DNA of 64,000 bases, taken from contig OZ025727.1 of NCBI GenBank assembly GCA_964019335.1, forward strand, positions 372,001 through 436,000, given 5' to 3'. Of the stretch, positions 6,673 to 64,000 are shown piece after piece; position 1 is the first letter of the stretch, and each line of letters begins with the position of its first letter. This DNA comes from Diplonema japonicum. Taxonomy: Eukaryota; Protista; Euglenozoa: Diplonemea. Made by a program: the position numbers and the translations under genes. The notes under the pieces were generated by a model. The model did no database searches and was not told the origin of the DNA. It saw only the letters and a list, made by a program, of their open reading frames with translations.

Positions 6673-9600
6673 ATGAGTGCGCTGCGGTATCCCTTGCTAC
6701 CGGAGGAGACGGCAGCAAGGCGGTCGGAGTATACATCCGAAGAAGGGGCAACGGAGCAAGGGCGAACAAGAACAGAGTCAGTGACCAGCGGGAGGACAGG
6801 TGCAGAGGCAGCGGGAAGGCAGCGGTACGAAAGGAGTAGGGCGTTCTTCTGTGTGTACCCTGACGGATGCTTCAGGGGTGCCTGCATCGACATCGTGTGC
6901 AACGTGTGGTTCAACAGAGCCATCTTGGTGTGCATCTGCATCAATGCCCTGACCATCTCTCTAGACGACCCACTGCACGACAACCTCCCCTACTCCTTGC
7001 GGTACACCATTGAGGTGATCGATAACATCTTCCTTGGCATCTTCACCTTGGAGTTCATTGTCAAGCTCGTCGCAATGGGCGGCTTCGTTCACCGCTCGGG
7101 ATACTTCCGCGAGCTGTGGAACTGGCTCGACTTCGCCATCGTCTTCTCCGGCATCTTCGGCCTCATCATGCCGCACGCCGCGAACCTCAGCATTTTGCGT
7201 GTCGTAAGGATCTTCCGCCCACTGCGTACCATCTCCCGTGTGAAGGGCATGCGCGATCTTGTCGACACGCTGGGCACCTCGCTCCCCATCTTGCTCAATG
7301 TCATGATGTTGTGCTTTTTCCTCTTCTTCATCTTCGGTCTTGTAGGAGTCATTTCGTGGTCCAGCGCACTCCACAACAGGTGCTACGGGTGGTCTGACGA
7401 GGAGGACGACTTCACCTACACCACCGTGTGCGGGAACGACAGCGTTTTCGAGTTCTTCCGAGTCAACTGTGCTGAGAACAGGACGTGCGTGTCGGGTGCG
7501 CCAAATCCCAACCCTTGGGCGAACTGGGACCACGTCGGGTCATCGTTCCTAGTGGTGACGCAGTGCCTCACCCTCGACGACTGGGTGACCCACATGTACC
7601 ACGTGCAAGACGGGTGGTCGCCCTTCGCCGCTGTCTACTTTGTTGTTGTGACGCTAGTCGGTGCCTTCTTTCTGCTGAACCTTGTCCTGGCCGTGATCAC
7701 TGACTCCTTCACAAGGTTCGCCATCGAGGAAGATGACAAAGACCTGCAGGCTGCGAGGGACAACATGCAGCAGCGTGTTATCAAGCAAAGGACAGAACAG
7801 GAGGCTTCCGAAGAAGGGGGAGAAGCTAACTACAGCGAGCTCCCCTCCGAGACTACTTCGAGCTGCAGCAGCAGGCCTGACTCTCCTGGCTCCCTCCATG
7901 AAAACAAAAATGTCGCCGCACGCAGTCGCACCCGTCAGAACAGTTTGTACCTGAACTCTTCACTACCAGGCCTTGAACAGGGTGCTCAGCGTCTCTTGCG
8001 AGATCAGTCAACCAAGAGAGAGTGGAAAAAGTTCACTGAAGGGCTTGACAAGGCAGGCAGGAAGGCCATCAAGAATTTCAGGAAGCTCGAAGGGTCCCGT
8101 GAATGGACGTCGCATGTACGCGGCATAACAGGAAGGAGGAGGGCGGGGACATGCATCCAGCCGTCCATCGACAAGCTGCAAGGCATGGAGGACGGACCCA
8201 GGAGGCGGAGCGAGGGTACTGTGATTTCAAAGAAGATCAGGAATAAGATCGTTCAGGCGCAGACCATCGAGAGCTCCTTGACCTTGAGATCCCTGGACGC
8301 GCAGTCGAGGAAGAAGCTGATGCAGTTCACCGACTCTGCCTACGCGGTGCAGCTCACAGATGTGAACGAGGTTTCATCGGAAGGGACCGCGGTCACCTTA
8401 ACCAACATGAACAGCAACTTCGGCCGTAGCGAAAACAGCAACGAGAACAACAACCACGGCAACGGTGACAGAGGCACAAATATCAATGCCAGCGAGGAGA
8501 ATATGAACCCGTTGATGTTTCCAAAGTCGATGAGGACGGCGTTGGTGGAACCCGAGAGCCTCGCTGAAGGTGAGGCGATCGACAGCGCATGGAAGCTGCA
8601 TTTGAAGCCGGACAGGGCGTCGGTGATGAGGAACTTCGGAAGGGACATCGTGACGCACCCGTACTTTATCAATGTGATGACGGGCCTCATTGTTCTGAAC
8701 GCGCTGGTGATGTCCGTGGAGCACTACCACATGGAGCCGTGGATCAACGACGTGCTGGAGCTCTCTAACATCATCATCGTGTCCATCTTCACCTTCGAGA
8801 CTGTCATCAAGCTCCTGTCGCTCAGCTTGCCAGAGTTCTACGAAGACGACTTCAACGTCATCGACGCTGTCATCGTTGTCATGTCGCTTGCAGAACTCAT
8901 CTTCCTCAGCTCCTCAGCGGCCACAGTCTTCAGAATACTCCGCCTTGCACGAGTCGTACGTGTTGTCAAACTAGCACGTGGCTGGCGGGTGCTGAAGCAT
9001 ATCGTCAAAACGGTCGGATCGTCGCTGTCTTATATGGGGTACCTGCTGCTGTTGCTGATGCTGTTCATATTCGTGTTCGGCATCCTCGGGAGGCAAATGT
9101 TCGCAGGCAAGGTGAGCCGCTGCTGCGTGCAAGACGACAAAGCAAGCGGTCTCTACAACTGCTACAAGGACACCGACGAGCACTACATATACGACGCATG
9201 CTGGAATACAGCATGGAAGCGAACACACTTCGACACCCTCTTCTGGTCGATGATTGCCGTTTTTCAGATTGTGACGCAAGACAACTGGACGGCTGTCATG
9301 TACAAGACAATGTCTGATGTGGGGGGCTTCTCGGCGGTGTACTTTCTCATCATTTTGATATTCGGGAGATACATGCTTCTCAACCTCTTCGTGGCGATCC
9401 TGCTTGTGGGGCTTGAGAAGGAGCACGCCAAGCGCGACGAGCTGTCGTCCGCTGACGGCGATGCATGTGACGACTTCAATGGTGTTCTGGACGACAGCAG
9501 CGAGGAAGAAGAATGCGAGTACCCACCACAAGTCCGCTACGAGGAGAAGCAAGCACAACGTGAGTACACAAAGTCCACTAAAACTGCTATGCGCAGCACC

Positions 9601-59123: not shown

Positions 59124-60218
59124 ATGCGCGTAGCCTTGTTGCTACTGCTTGCAGGAGCGGCCAGCGGATGTGTGACTAACATCGACTGCTGGATGAACGG
59201 TGTGTGCACCAACGGTGCATGCCACTGCAGCAAGGGATGGAAGGGCGAGAATTGCACTCAGCTCAACTTGCAGCCGGCACCTGTTGTCGGTGCCTACGGG
59301 TATGCGCCCAATGTCAGCAGCTGGGGTGGGCTCCCCACGAAGATAGACGGGAAGTGGCACTTGCACGCCGCAGAGATGACTAATGGCTGCGGCCTTTCCA
59401 GCTGGGGTAAGAACAGCAGAGTGATCCATGCCGTAAGCGACAACATGACCGGCCCCTACTCTAGGCAGGACGTGACCTTGGGTGCGTGGGCTCACAACCC
59501 ACAGCTTGCTGTTGACAACCACACCGGGACACCTACGTATCTGTTGTTCCACATCGGCACGGGGACTCACAGTGGCTCTCTCGAAAACTGTGGCGAGAAC
59601 ACACCCGAGCCCGTTGCACCCACAGTGACGTCGAACGTGCTCCACACGGCAAGCTCTCCTTACGGTCCTTGGGAGCCGTACAATGGCCTCCCGGGCATCA
59701 ACAACCCATCGCCATTCGTGTTCCCGAATGGGACCATTGTCATCACAGGAACAAGCTGGAACATCTACCGTGCCGACAGCTGGAAGGGGCCTTGGAAGAA
59801 GACACCCATTGTATGGTCCGGAGACGGTGGGCAAGGCGTTTGGGAGGACCCGTTCATCTTTTATGACCCTGTGATGAGTGTTTGGAAGATGATCGCACAC
59901 GTGTGGCCCAGTTACGCACCCGACCAGCCTGCCTGCGACCACAACTACTCCTTGAGAGAAGCAGGCTTTGCCTACTCATTTGACGGCATCCACTGGGTCA
60001 AGTCGTCGACCCCGCCCTTTGATAACAAGGTACAACACACGGACGGCAGCACGACAGCGCTTTCGACACGCGAGCGCCCTAAGGTGATCTTCGCTGCCGA
60101 TGGGCACACGCCAATCGGTCTATCAAATGGAGTATCAGCAAACCCCGAGCCGTGGGGCTGTAAGGATAAGCCAGGTGTCGATTGGACCTACACCCTTGTG
60201 GTGCCCATCGGAGAGTGA
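59124..60218 (+). CDS. Secreted EGF-like + beta-propeller glycoside hydrolase (GH43-like clan)
   Basis: Signal peptide; CWMNGVCTNGACHCSKGWKGENC EGF-like; SSWGG, AHNP, NNPSP, WEDPFIF, RERP motifs. Confidence 0.75.
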   Translation: MRVALLLLLAGAASGCVTNIDCWMNGVCTNGACHCSKGWKGENCTQLNLQPAPVVGAYGYAPNVSSWGGLPTKIDGKWHLHAAEMTNGCGLSSWGKNSRVIHAVSDNMTGPYSRQDVTLGAWAHNPQLAVDNHTGTPTYLLFHIGTGTHSGSLENCGENTPEPVAPTVTSNVLHTASSPYGPWEPYNGLPGINNPSPFVFPNGTIVITGTSWNIYRADSWKGPWKKTPIVWSGDGGQGVWEDPFIFYDPVMSVWKMIAHVWPSYAPDQPACDHNYSLREAGFAYSFDGIHWVKSSTPPFDNKVQHTDGSTTALSTRERPKVIFAADGHTPIGLSNGVSANPEPWGCKDKPGVDWTYTLVVPIGE

Positions 60219-60621
60219 ACTCCGTAAGACGACCGTGTGTCTTGAGTGCTTTTGCTAACGTCTTTGTTCGTGTCATATTCGGAGTGTCGATCTTGTTTTA
60301 AGTGATTTTTACCAACGTCCTTATCCGTGTTCTCAACGTTTAGTTTTAAAAGGTGAAGTAAGTCCCGCGAAAGCCCGGAGAATGTTTCTCTTCCCGTGCT
60401 CGGCTAGGAGACATGACCTGAAGTGCAGAAAGGCATCATCGCCTCAGTGTCGAATCAATGTATTTTAGCTAAACGTTTCTCCCCTCCCCCGCATCTTCCC
60501 TGCTATCACCAATCACACAGGAGAAGAGAAGAAATGTTAACGACATGCCGAGGACAAAGCATGTCCGTGCCGTCAAATTTGAAAGAAACGACAAAAGCTA
60601 AAAGCTGATAAACCCATCCCT

Positions 60622-60874
60622 GTTCTGCCAAGTTCCACCACGTTCCACCAGTTCTGCCAGTTCCACCATGTTCCGCCAGTTCCACCAGTTCCACCATGTT
60701 CCGCCATGTTCCACCATGTTCTGCCAGTTCCACCATGTTCCACCACGTTCCGCCAGTTCTGCCATGTTCCACCAGTTCCACCATGTTCCGCCAGTTCTAC
60801 CAGTTCCGCCAAGTTCCGCCGTTCCACCGTTCCACCAAGTTCCGACTTTTCAGTTTGGTGGAAGGGAACGGAAC
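60622..60874. repeat. Minisatellite of 9-10-nt units GTTCYRCCA(T), roughly 23 copies, ending in inverted copies
   Basis: Read directly. TTCCACCAA (60830-38) is inverted as TTGGTGGAA (60855-63). Flanked by ACCCAYCCCTG at 60612 and 60876. Confidence 0.9.
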
Positions 60875-61347
60875 GACCCACCCCTGCCCAGGACACTGGC
60901 TAGGGTTGAGCTGGACACCGCATGCATTAAGGACACAACGTGGAACGCAAACGCGGCTGAGATCATACCCAACACTGGTGTCTCGGCACCCATTCTGGGA
61001 TGAAGTTATGAGGTTTCAGATGGATACAAATAGTGCATCTAACGCAGATTTTCAATATCTTTCCATTCCATCTTTTTTTTATGAAAACCGATCCAAGGCT
61101 TTGGTCTAGATGACCACAGAACAATTACACCTATTAACTGCTTCTACAGAAGCAGTTGGGCGTTTAAGGGTTAAAGGACAGGGTTTTTTTTCAATATAGA
61201 CACTTGTTGGTAGATGGTTTATTCATCACCTTTTTCTTGAAAGTATTCGTTTTACAGTGGGTTTTCTTCCATTGTCAACCAGCTACCGGTCGCTCCATTG
61301 ACTTCTGCAGCCTTCAAGACAAGCACACAGGGAAAATACATTAGAAA

Positions 61348-61386
61348 AACCAACGATTCTAAAGCTACAGTTTCTGTACTTTATTG
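61348..61386 (+). other. Complete 39-nt spliced-leader (SL) exon of diplonemid type
   Basis: AACCAACGATTCTAAAGCTACAGTTTCTGTACTTTATTG: 39 nt, AAC start, and the conserved euglenozoan 3' half CAGTTTCTGTACTTTATTG. Confidence 0.95.
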
Positions 61387-61528
61387 GTCGTCTGTGTTTT
61401 TGTTGGTGCCTGCTGCGTCCGCTCGGTGTCCGTTCGTCGTCGTCTGGGGGGGTTGTTTCGGCCCGGCCCGCCTGCCGTTTAGCAAAGGATCCCCTCCCCC
61501 CTCAACACAAAAAAAAAAAAAAATAAAA

Positions 61529-64000
61529 ATGGACCCTAGACGAAACGTCGTCGGAGACCGCCGCCCGCAGGAGGAACGCCTACGAGAGACGCCGACCAAG
61601 CCGACCACCCGACCAGACCGAAATCTGGCCGGGCAGTATGACCCCTCCCCTCCCCTTAGATCCCCTCTAGATGTCGTCAAAAATAATAAAAAACATAAAA
61701 ACCAGGCAATCTGGTTGGGCACAGAGACCGCGGTTTTGACCGCCGCTGCTACAACCACGGCCGCCCCAGCCACCCTGAACGCCGCAGCCGACCCTGCCGC
61801 CCTAATCGCCGCAACTGAGACCGCCGCAGCCGCCCCTGCCGCAGCCACGACCGCCGCGACCACGACCCCTGCAGCCGACCCTGCTATTGTTGAAGAGGGA
61901 AGAAAAGAGGGAGAAAAAAAGGGGTGGGTACTGGTGTATGGTGAACACCCTCCCGGGTTGAGGACGGGCCCGGCCCCTGCCTTCCCGAAAGCCCTGCTTT
62001 CAGGAAAGTGGGAGGCCCTGTCTGGGAACTCAGGGAGGGAGACCCTCCAATACGGGTACCGGTGGGAGGGGACGAACGCCAAGGTGCGCCCCACCACGGG
62101 GATCCCAGGGGGGGCGGAGGGGTGGGTGAGGGAGGTGGCCGCCGCCGCAGGGCTCGAGGTGGTCCCCAACCAGGTACTTGTCAACAAGTACAAGTCTGGT
62201 TGTGGGATTGCCGCCCACAAGGACGACGCGAGGCTGGGACCGATTGTCCTAGTCCTCTCGTACGGAGCCGAGACCACAATGGTCATGAGGAGGGGGGACA
62301 GGGTGGCGAAATACCTGGTGCCCCCCTTCTCATGGGCATTGTTGGAAGGTGAAGCGAGACACCAGTGGACGCACCACATCCCGTCCGGGATGTCCACTGG
62401 TGTCAGGGTGTCGATCACCCTGCGTGCGGTAGGCCCCAAGCTCACCCGCACACCCCAGGAAGACCCATCCCCTGGGTTAACAGACGAACCCCCTTTTTTA
62501 GATCCCCTTTTTTGTGGGCAAGGGGGGGTGGCACTCCCAAGAGAGGATAGTGCCCCACCCGCCCCCCTTTTTTTTTTAGAACCCTCTTCGGAGGAAAACA
62601 GACCCTCTTCGGAGGAAAATAGAGAGAAAGGGGAAGAGGTGGCACTCCCGAGAGAGGGTGGTGCTCCTCCCCCCCATTTGTCCCCCCCTTTTTCATTTTT
62701 AGAGCCCTCTCCAGAGGAACCCTCCACGGAGGTAAAAAACAGACCCTCTTCGGAGGAAAAAAAGGCAGAGGGAGAGACAGCACGCCCGAGAGAAGGTAGT
62801 GCCCCTCCCTCTCTGCCCCCCATTTTTTCTGGACCCTCTACGGAGGTGTACACCCTGGTCCCCAAGGGCCGGGGGCTTTTTTTGAGGGTGGAAGGGAAAG
62901 AAAAAAAAAAAACAAACAAGGAGGAACCTTTTTTCTTTTCAAACAACCAGGGGGACCCAGCACCCACCCCCACCGCCCGCCTAGGTGTGGTTGGGGCGGA
63001 GGCTGCGAGCGACGTGAGAGCACCACTGCACACCCTTGTGAGAAGACAGAAAAGAGCCCCCTGGATTGCCATGGGTGGCAGGGAACCTAAGCCAGCGCCC
63101 AAGCGGAAGAAGAACAGGAGGAGGCACAGGAGCGAAACGGCCCTTCAGAGGCGTCGGGAGAAGAGGACCAAGGCGAGGGAGGGGGCGAGGGAGGCTGCCA
63201 GACAGGAGAAGAAAAGGCACCGTCGTGCGAGGAAAGAAGGGAGGAGGAGGGCCCGCAGAGAGGAACACGAGGCCGCCCTGGAACAGAAGCCAGATGACCC
63301 TGCAATGGGGCTGAAGCGGACCGAGGTGGGAACGCCTGGAGCCCAACCCCTGGCACCCAGAATCCCGGCACCTGGGGCTGCAACCGGCACAAGGAGGCAC
63401 CGCAGACGGACGGGACACAGCAAGGAAGGGGTGAGATGGGAGCACCTGGGGGTGTGGGCCTGGGTCGCCCTGGTCTCCCTCTTGCTGATCCCAGGGGTGA
63501 GGCAGGTGCTGGGGGCGGGCATCGGGATGGCCCCCTCCTTCCTGCATGCGGCAGTGTTGTGGAAGAGGCCGGGGAGCGACAGGAGGACCACCCGCAGGTC
63601 AAGGGTACAGGTGGGGCCCCGAGGGGATGAATGGTCCGCCGGGGAGCTCGCTTGGCTAGCAGTAGGGGGCACTCTGGTGGGAAGCACTTCAGTTTGGATA
63701 GGGGGGCTGATGTCGCTCTGGGCCATGTCGGAAGTGATGGTGTGGAAAGCTGGTGCTGACCCGGCCCAGAGATTCGGACCGGTAAAGCTGAGGAAGACAA
63801 GACGCGGATCGAGAGGTCACTACCTGCCGGTGTACTTGGGCCCGCCTAGAAGCTCAAGACGCAGAAAAAAGAAGGAAGACGCCAAGCAAGCGGCGAAGGA
63901 ACGAGCCGAGACGGAGGATAAGCTCTTTCAGGCCGAACACCTGGACCCCTTTGCGGACTTGACGCTGGCAGGGGACGCGTTGCAAGGAGGTGGTGACCCT
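61529..64000 (+). CDS. Large ORF (>=824 aa, 3' partial) with AlkB-family 2OG-Fe(II) dioxygenase domain; probable retroelement polyprotein
   Basis: Hand translation finds no stop from ATG 61529 to 64000. Domain ~61925-62425: RETLQYGYRW, PNQVLVNKY..G.GIAAHKD, IVLVLSYG, LEGEARHQWTHHIP, RVSITLR. Confidence 0.9.
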   Translation, partial: MDPRRNVVGDRRPQEERLRETPTKPTTRPDRNLAGQYDPSPPLRSPLDVVKNNKKHKNQAIWLGTETAVLTAAATTTAAPATLNAAADPAALIAATETAAAAPAAATTAATTTPAADPAIVEEGRKEGEKKGWVLVYGEHPPGLRTGPAPAFPKALLSGKWEALSGNSGRETLQYGYRWEGTNAKVRPTTGIPGGAEGWVREVAAAAGLEVVPNQVLVNKYKSGCGIAAHKDDARLGPIVLVLSYGAETTMVMRRGDRVAKYLVPPFSWALLEGEARHQWTHHIPSGMSTGVRVSITLRAVGPKLTRTPQEDPSPGLTDEPPFLDPLFCGQGGVALPREDSAPPAPLFFLEPSSEENRPSSEENREKGEEVALPREGGAPPPHLSPPFSFLEPSPEEPSTEVKNRPSSEEKKAEGETARPREGSAPPSLPPIFSGPSTEVYTLVPKGRGLFLRVEGKEKKKTNKEEPFFFSNNQGDPAPTPTARLGVVGAEAASDVRAPLHTLVRRQKRAPWIAMGGREPKPAPKRKKNRRRHRSETALQRRREKRTKAREGAREAARQEKKRHRRARKEGRRRARREEHEAALEQKPDDPAMGLKRTEVGTPGAQPLAPRIPAPGAATGTRRHRRRTGHSKEGVRWEHLGVWAWVALVSLLLIPGVRQVLGAGIGMAPSFLHAAVLWKRPGSDRRTTRRSRVQVGPRGDEWSAGELAWLAVGGTLVGSTSVWIGGLMSLWAMSEVMVWKAGADPAQRFGPVKLRKTRRGSRGHYLPVYLGPPRSSRRRKKKEDAKQAAKERAETEDKLFQAEHLDPFADLTLAGDALQGGGDP

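Follow-up and report, generated by a model that had tools for sequence, protein, structure and literature searches.

A spliced-leader-headed, AlkB-encoding element at the chromosome ends of Diplonema japonicum is probably an autonomous R2-group retrotransposon

The stretch of Diplonema japonicum DNA analysed here (referred to as the window) covers 64,000 nucleotides of contig OZ025727.1 of assembly GCA_964019335.1 (i.e., C80:372001-436000, with C80 being 448,382 bp long), and runs out within an element that is situated 15 kb from the contig end and is headed by a complete, DNA-encoded spliced leader (SL). The initial annotation, made from the letters of the window, had described a 39-nt SL that is joined to a 142-nt leader and an open reading frame (ORF) of at least 824 codons, is followed by GTCGT, and precedes an AlkB dioxygenase domain within that ORF. 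All of this was borne out by exact matching, translation and domain searches: the SL (AACCAACGATTCTAAAGCTACAGTTTCTGTACTTTATTG) is found without mismatch (0 such matches expected by chance), the bases after it read GTCGTC, and the frame not only stays open to the window end but continues past it to L061:5154 (L061 being C80:433001-443000). The positions of these features are given in Table 1. For all genome-wide results below, the sequence searched comprised 62.5 Mb in 132 contigs; the D. japonicum YPF1604 genome has been published as a 62.3-Mb HiFi and Hi-C assembly of 118 chromosomes, in a data note that makes no mention of telomeres, repeats or the SL (PMC13598402).

Beyond the window, a reverse transcriptase (RT), a restriction-like endonuclease (RLE) and a poly(A) tail were found in what proved to be a multicopy element, in agreement with the earlier proposal that the feature is the 5′ end of a full-length retroelement. 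The full element is ~9.33 kb long (9,331 bp in the copy on contig C9, SL and poly(A) included) and consists of the 39-nt SL, the 142-nt leader, an ORF of 2,804 aa, a T-rich 3′ untranslated region (3′UTR) with 25-nt units, and poly(A). In the intact copies on C9 and C16 this ORF is a single natural frame with AlkB, OTU and complete RVT_1 domains; no repaired or consensus sequence was built, the pieces of the C80 copy were searched separately, and the uninterrupted C9 copy was used as is. Its N-terminal part carries AlkB, basic and hydrophobic linkers, and an OTU cysteine protease placed between two C2H2-like fingers (Pfam OTU at aa 942-1047, 47.7 bits vs. a cut-off of 23.3, with the catalytic DGNCMF Cys loop at aa 942 and the NGNHYEY His motif). 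It is followed by the RT, a CCHC knuckle, a PD-(D/E)XK endonuclease, an acidic linker and an unassigned C-terminal domain, and an ESM Atlas search with the C-terminal 440 aa gave no usable match. Likewise, aa 320-900 of the polyprotein found 0 relatives among 1.84 billion representative proteins. The C80, C16 and C9 copies are 99.8-99.9% alike, and their likeness gives way to differing flanks exactly at SL nt 1-3. At the other end, the 3′UTR closes across copies with one to at least eight units of the 25-nt TTCTCAAGTCCCCCTTTTTATTTAT, followed by a poly(A) tail of 6 to more than 60 A.

The copy that reaches into the window is itself split, with RT motifs 0-2 situated at the C-terminus of a first frame (ORF1) and motif A onward in a second one (ORF2; L061:4979-8935). 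At this site 45 of the 46 genomic copies read ...ACACACC..., only C80 being 2 nt shorter, and the longer form is also present in public sequencing runs (here and below always Logan contigs of unknown kind). A programmed frameshift between ORF1 and ORF2 was rejected, since the split and its 2-nt-shorter form are private to C80 and the C9 and C16 ORFs are continuous. Further downstream, likeness of the C80 copy to its sister copies ends at L061:9148, the 3′UTR of the C9 copy extending ~530 nt more, and the T-run of the C80 3′UTR holds a long interspersed nuclear element (LINE) that encodes a 2,071-aa protein with an apurinic/apyrimidinic endonuclease (APE) and an RT (Exo_endo_phos and RVT_1). 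The interrupted 3′UTR resumes at the very end of the contig. The window copy is young (99.8% identical) but inactive, with its RT frameshift and the LINE insertion.

The RT corresponds to Pfam RVT_1, and the catalytic motifs of both RT (YLDD) and endonuclease (RPAD) are present. A family profile of 36 relatives matched R2 proteins with an E-value of 1.8e-39, in an alignment that starts at the RT fingers and takes in the thumb, the CCHC knuckle and the RLE. An AlphaFold2 (AF2) model made with the 36-sequence alignment reached a predicted local distance difference test (pLDDT) score of 91.5 (a model of ORF2 without alignment, with a pLDDT of 35.7, was set aside), and its best Foldseek matches were R2 complexes engaged in target-primed reverse transcription (TPRT; E-values of 2.6e-17 to 1e-12), with LINE-1 ORF2p next. 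The nuclease motif in ORF2 (i.e., CHDPRC..H..C..RHD..(19)..E..(10)..RPAD..(15)..D) fits the SLACS/CRE/MoTeR pattern C-x-C-x-H-x-C ... RHD/N ... E ... R/KPD ... D/E, with some spacings slightly outside the published ranges (PMC12857005). The closest named relatives are D. papillatum proteins called "Retrotransposable element SLACS 132 kDa protein" (37% identity). The element therefore has the arrangement that defines the R2 group (i.e., a single ORF with RT, then CCHC, then PD-(D/E)XK endonuclease) as well as the hallmarks of TPRT (i.e., a 3′ poly(A) tail and variable 5′ truncation). Assignment to the Penelope-like elements or Terminons was rejected, the best matches being R2 and LINE RTs with an RLE and no Rfam ribozyme family being found.

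The initial annotation had called the feature single-copy, which holds within the window and fails for the genome as a whole, where at least 74 stretches match the sequence that follows the SL. Its leader-bearing 5′ ends number 24, each with the exact SL|GTCGTCTGTG junction, and lie nearly all near contig ends. All minus-strand matches (36/36) fall within 80 kb of contig starts, plus-strand matches on contigs with a known end sit near that end, and in every case the C-rich strand of the terminal repeat (CCCGCAAA)n is the one that continues the sense strand. Copies truncated at their 5′ side stand directly behind the poly(A) of older copies, and fragments are strung into mosaic chains, each broken off on its 3′ side and then met by a new 5′ end (e.g., L013). 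Upstream of the copies lie unique DNA, poly(A), terminal repeats or broken and truncated older elements, and the 5′ junctions with unrelated flanks all start at SL nt 1 or 2, the first SL base being A at 10 of the 19 flanks left once A-rich and repeat-like ones are set apart. The C9 copy, for instance, lies between a truncated older element on its upstream side and terminal repeats on its downstream side. In sequencing run X1 the word depth is even at ~2,600, which would fit ~100-fold HiFi DNA multiplied by ~25 copies; the element is also present in runs X2 and X9. From their sequences, the variation in poly(A), the 5′ truncations, the SL junctions at AG sites and the relic SLs (see below) indicate that these copies probably arose by retrotransposition.

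The contigs concerned end in 0.4-0.9 kb of an 8-nt repeat (e.g., L064:1-621, L024:3471-3934 and L025:1-460; 6,171 overlapping 24-mer matches genome-wide), and (TTAGGG)4 is absent from the genome. Because left ends read 5′-GGGTTTGC... and right ends ...CCCGCAAA-3′, the strand ending 3′ appears to be the C-rich one. To our knowledge the rule for telomeres is that the G-rich strand ends 3′, so that the polarity seen here is the reverse. A literature search on the 8-nt repeat returned only primer noise, and one on diplonemid telomeres and telomerase found nothing relevant. With terminal repeats of reversed polarity, the elements come to point their 3′ ends outward, and the fixed relation between their sense strand and the C-rich strand would follow from priming on poly(A) by the G-rich strand, which contains T. 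Truncated elements are also capped directly at AAA|CCCGCAAA (L031, L045 and L043), as if the repeats had been added de novo to a 3′ end. A TERT candidate is marked by a Telomerase_RBD match (C41:533974-534300; 28.4 bits, exceeding the cut-off) within an open frame of 1,086 aa. Replacement of telomerase by elements of the HeT-A/TART type was rejected, given that the contigs are capped by repeat arrays and that this candidate is present. Head-to-head terminal arrays inside C30 (L043:998-1197, at ~334.8 kb) were considered as an ancient fusion and dismissed, since they flank a 200-N scaffold join that looks like Hi-C scaffolding of two chromosome ends.

All 24 leader copies are preceded by the SL, and their main junction SL|GTCGTC follows TG in every one of them. 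An SL-less master copy with an AG|GTCGTC acceptor was found nowhere in the genome. Since the main junction thus follows TG and lacks an AG|GTCGTC source, the full SL appears to be inherited as DNA; and since there is no SL-less master copy and cDNAs reach SL nt 1-2, the element RNA would have to begin at the SL. Other junctions lie right after AG dinucleotides of the leader (61481-61482 and 61486-61487 in the window), i.e., SL|CAAAGG (reading SL|CAAAGGATCC) and SL|GATCC (reading SL|GATCCCC), and a third class, SL|TTTCTGTACTTTATTG, follows the CAG inside an older SL, of which it leaves a relic (SL+16 nt). The SL|CAAAGG class also occurs in sequencing run X4, with a joint from 385 to 482 on L061 that has GT..AG ends. 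Because these SL junctions follow AG and the joint in run X4 has such ends, spliced transcripts of DNA copies appear to have been copied back as well. Two further classes (SL|TCTGTG and SL|GTGCC) look like small deletions. A ribozyme (HDV-like or hammerhead) as maker of the 5′ end was rejected, there being no Rfam match at an E-value of 1 or below in SL plus leader; the only Rfam matches were four sub-threshold ones, all in the 3′UTR. As for starts within a transcribed sequence, the SL exon of Ascaris is an intragenic promoter element of its own gene, and L1Tc reportedly has an internal promoter.

Genome-wide, the SL 39-mer has 207 matches at two or fewer mismatches, only nine of which are SL RNA genes. 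The latter read SL|GTACCCAATCTGATCC, so that the GTATG donor that the initial annotation had considered typical of SL RNA genes did not hold up, and they share a conserved upstream sequence (...GGGTTTGGAGAAAGAGGTYCGGGAGGTT). Upstream of the window copy only chance matches to an SL-gene promoter were obtained. The SL RNA genes (C15:779064-779443; C59:512399-512772; C4, C51 and C107; L033, L038, L050 and L056) stand ~350 bp apart where they are in tandem, with two arrays at contig ends, and the assembled arrays are probably collapsed. Two copies, C2:150556 and C30:484559, have the SL intron and a T at SL nt 1, and may be retrocopies of SL RNA itself. Other SL-headed unit families with different cargo were also encountered (L032:1501-2973, L059, L051, L052, L060 and L047), one with a 460-aa ORF after SL|GGTGGGGGG and another with an OTU-like ORF after a "B" leader (SL|GTCGTTCGTG). 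They mostly stand behind A-runs, and several are chromosome-internal.

The AlkB domain matches Pfam 2OG-FeII_Oxy_2 with 51.5 bits (vs. a cut-off of 31.2), and its iron triad and 2OG motif are intact (H230-K-D, the WTHH histidine and R293-V-S-I-T-L-R). Catalytic motifs are retained in four lineages of AlkB elements (100, 86, 67 and 52% aa identity), with ratios of non-synonymous to synonymous substitution rates (dN/dS) of 0.25-0.39, so that AlkB appears to be under purifying selection in all four and, judged by this selection, is predicted to be functional. The fourth lineage (52% identical; L034:704-1246, minus strand, motifs intact) adjoins another SL-headed unit. The best sequence relatives are small AlkB proteins as well as the D. 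papillatum ALKBH8 homologue (35-39% identity), and a metagenome scan with the domain found one weak relative (34% identity). In D. japonicum, a transcript ORF is 75% identical to the N-terminus of the element. Since D. papillatum has one partial AlkB+OTU protein and another with OTU+RT, the AlkB+OTU architecture appears to be shared by species of the genus Diplonema; no description of a retroelement with this architecture was found in the searchable literature.

Within the window, the 364-aa ORF listed in Table 1 is the last ordinary-looking gene ahead of the element chain, and two repeat families lie between them. The ~200-bp one is possibly a short interspersed nuclear element (SINE) or a miniature inverted-repeat transposable element (MITE). 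In the polyprotein itself, the hydrophobic segment downstream of AlkB is possibly a membrane anchor.

Table 1. Features of the window copy and its surroundings (positions refer to the window unless a contig or locus is named).
Feature	Position	Strand	Basis or remarks
DNA-encoded 39-nt SL	61348..61386	+	Exact match; exact element 5′ terminus
142-nt leader, begins GTCGTCTGTG	61387..61528	+	GTCGTC directly after SL
Polyprotein ORF, first 824 codons	61529..64000	+	Translation; ATG at 61529, open to window end
AlkB-type 2OG-Fe(II) dioxygenase domain, aa 166-299	62024..62425	+	Pfam PF13532, E 1.9e-13
HKD motif	62216-62224	+	AlkB domain of window ORF
RVSITLR motif	62405-62425	+	AlkB domain of window ORF
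Pro/Ser/Glu-rich repeats, then strongly basic Arg/Lys stretch	62430..63440	+	No Pfam match
Hydrophobic segment, aa 639-666	63443..63526	+	Kyte-Doolittle 19-aa windows >1.5
APE-LINE, 6.2 kb	L065:88-6300 = C80:442088-448300		Just past window; inserted in AlkB element 3′UTR
364-aa ORF	59124-60218		70% identical paralogue at C62:468097-469128
Second repeat family	60618-60961		83-89% matches in several places; some local clusters (C25, C32, C49, C81)
~200-bp dispersed repeat	60978-61175		At least 30 copies, 92-97% identity, chromosome-internal sites, many contigs

Taken together, we regard the feature in the window, with a probability of about 85%, as the 5′-terminal third of a single copy of an autonomous R2-group retrotransposon without long terminal repeats (non-LTR) that is most like CRE/SLACS. 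A number of observations weigh against this reading or parts of it. Placement in the CRE clade stems from the automatic "SLACS" names on the best matches and not from a tree, and the best solved relative of AlkB is the tRNA hydroxylase ALKBH8 (E-value of 1.8e-9). No promoter was found at the 5′ end of the element to account for an RNA start at the SL, and the leader has neither an unusual fold (fold z-score of -0.44) nor a known ribozyme. Target-site duplication is absent at C9, and the C80 contig ends inside the element. Some copies are clearly duplicates at the DNA level: on C24 the SL 5′ ends at 7158, 17817, 28476 and 39059 are spaced by 10,659, 10,659 and 10,583 bp, which suggests a tandem array arising through DNA duplication and not through independent insertions. 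Finally, at many junctions an older, truncated element abuts the SL without intervening repeats, and these joints fit capture by an eroded end as well as endonuclease-driven insertion.

The source of the SL is where a competing account has most to offer, i.e., that each generation acquires a fresh SL through trans-splicing of a read-through precursor, the SL in the DNA being the copied product as in dinoflagellate retrogenes. Junction variants right after AG (SL|CAAAGG and SL|GATCC), SL+16-nt relics after the SL's own CAG, and the SL carried by unrelated unit families all speak for such a route, for which the T-rich 3′UTR of an upstream element could act as the polypyrimidine tract. We nevertheless hold it to be rather unlikely, while still giving it real weight: the SL|GTCGTC junction follows TG and not AG in all 24 cases with no SL-less AG|GTCGTC copy to derive from, re-splicing of DNA copies cannot regenerate it, and the relic forms are a small minority. 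Far less can be said for a CRE/SLACS-type element that sits inside an SL RNA gene, with the SL as target flank and the SL-gene promoter driving transcription, which the initial annotation (naming CRE, SLACS and CZAR) had kept as an option. The RT-RLE part is indeed SLACS-like, GT follows the SL as in an SL RNA gene, and SL genes are the target of most CRE and NeSL elements (PMC3636483). However, the upstream flanks vary among copies and bear no similarity to the SL-gene upstream sequence, no SL intron follows the SL, and nearly all SL matches lie outside SL genes; because the flanks carry neither SL-gene promoter nor intron, we set this possibility aside as very improbable.

A subtelomeric gene family spread solely by segmental duplication and recombination, from a retroelement long dead, would suit the location at chromosome ends (where exchange is frequent), the nearly equal spacing of the C24 5′ ends and the very high identity of the C80, C16 and C9 copies. 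It is nonetheless improbable in view of the independent 5′ junctions that fall exactly at SL nt 1-3 next to unrelated flanks, the varying poly(A) lengths and many 5′-truncated copies, the intact 2,804-aa ORFs with the RT frame kept at the tested site in all genomic copies but one, and the purifying selection on AlkB across lineages. It is hardly credible that the feature is an ordinary retrogene processed from a host AlkB mRNA, or that it is a chimera of the assembly: an SL and an ORF joined in DNA do have the look of a retrocopy, and AlkB does resemble the host ALKBH8 type, but AlkB shares one ORF with OTU, RT and RLE (which also disposes of a processed retrogene with a relic SL), and the same junction recurs 24 times with different flanks in a HiFi assembly (PMC13598402). 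None of the findings that the initial annotation had named as refuting a retroelement (i.e., a single copy, lack of RT or poly(A), or a chimeric assembly) was made, and the SL-headed AlkB element is a real retroelement.

Among known systems, the CRE clade (SLACS, CZAR, CRE1/CRE2) resembles the AlkB element in its single ORF with RT followed by CCHC and RLE, in its euglenozoan host, and in the close tie to the SL seen in the trypanosomatid elements. SLACS, CZAR, CRE1 and CRE2 are transcribed from the SL gene promoter and carry only part of the SL, being located within SL RNA genes, whereas the AlkB element begins with a complete 39-nt SL of its own, is found at chromosome ends, and encodes AlkB and OTU upstream of the RT. 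The fungal elements MoTeR and FoTeR, with RT and a restriction enzyme-like endonuclease (REL), are confined to telomeres in one fixed orientation, and TPRT on telomere repeats has been proposed for them (PMC12857005; PMC3636483). In MoTeR1, FoTeR and Cnl1, as in the AlkB element, the C-rich strand of the repeat continues the sense strand (PMC12857005). In contrast, it is their 5′ end that faces the terminus and the 3′ end of the AlkB element that is distal, the opposite facing being due to the opposite polarity of the D. japonicum terminal repeat, and the fungal elements are without SL, AlkB and OTU. R2 (TPRT complexes 9nl3, 9dou and 8gh6) gives the best profile and structural match over RT, thumb, linker, zinc knuckle and RLE, and the C2H2-like fingers N-terminal to the RT are a further likeness, while its 28S rDNA target differs from that of the AlkB element, as do the N-terminal domains. 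Moreover, R2 frees its own 5′ end via an HDV-like ribozyme, and the Rfam searches found no ribozyme in the AlkB element. The relic-SL retrogenes of dinoflagellates likewise have a DNA-encoded SL at the 5′ end of retroposed units, with relics cut at an internal AG through repeated rounds of splicing and reverse transcription, but they are passive copies of host mRNAs, whereas the element described here is autonomous with a full, inherited SL. Plant RNA viruses and orchid Ty3/Gypsy elements also encode an AlkB of their own, the orchid one being an active N6-methyladenosine (m6A) RNA demethylase in vitro (PMC9289625). These belong to another host kingdom and other element classes, whereas here AlkB is fused into the RT polyprotein of a non-LTR element and has ALKBH8, not the plant m6A demethylases, as nearest solved relative.

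As a working model, the endonuclease would nick the G/T-rich strand (TTTGCGGG) of the terminal repeats or, alternatively, a T-run opposite the poly(A) of an older element. The nicked 3′ end would then anneal to the poly(A) of the element RNA and prime cDNA synthesis, which would set the orientation and build head-to-tail chains, while erosion of the chromosome end would cut their distal (3′) side and terminal repeats would be added afresh. Initiation at SL +1 from internal signals seems the most likely route to the RNA, and read-through transcripts would in addition be spliced at AG sites and copied back, yielding the copies that have a short leader or a relic SL. A role of the SL in capping and translation, as put forward in the initial annotation, is putative, as is the demethylase role it gave to AlkB; removal of base methyl marks from element RNA would be the most likely function of this domain. 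AlkB could clear a hypermethylated SL cap region that would otherwise block the RT, or it could act on m6A-type marks. The cap-region idea builds on trypanosomatid cap 4 and known AlkB/FTO substrates, and on cDNAs that reach SL nt 1-2. In its widest and distinctly speculative form, which we find unlikely as a whole, the ~200 SL-headed units would make up a self-leadered system in which the DNA-encoded SL serves as an internal start signal and as cap acceptor, AlkB strips base methylations from the SL cap region so that the RT copies the leader to its last nucleotide, and the elements live in, and help build, chromosome ends of reverse polarity.

In the literature we found no retrotransposon whose own 5′ end is a complete SL; the searches brought up only CRE/NeSL elements that target SL genes and retrogenes passively tagged with an SL. 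Nor did we find any other non-LTR element with AlkB, which makes this the first example found. As a parasite of a host that trans-splices, the element is a natural experiment in ways of obtaining a 5′ end fit for translation, and if the self-leadered system just outlined were real, its RNAs would be born resembling mature host mRNAs. AlkB is fused to an RT here, and selection has kept it in several lineages and in two or more Diplonema species. Following plant RNA viruses and orchid Gypsy elements, this is the third time that a selfish element has independently recruited AlkB, and it points to RNA base methylation as a possible general barrier to reverse transcription or element expression. 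Finally, the element chains offer a readable record of chromosome-end erosion and healing in D. japonicum, and the polarity of its terminal repeats, if confirmed, would contradict the rule that the G-rich strand ends 3′.

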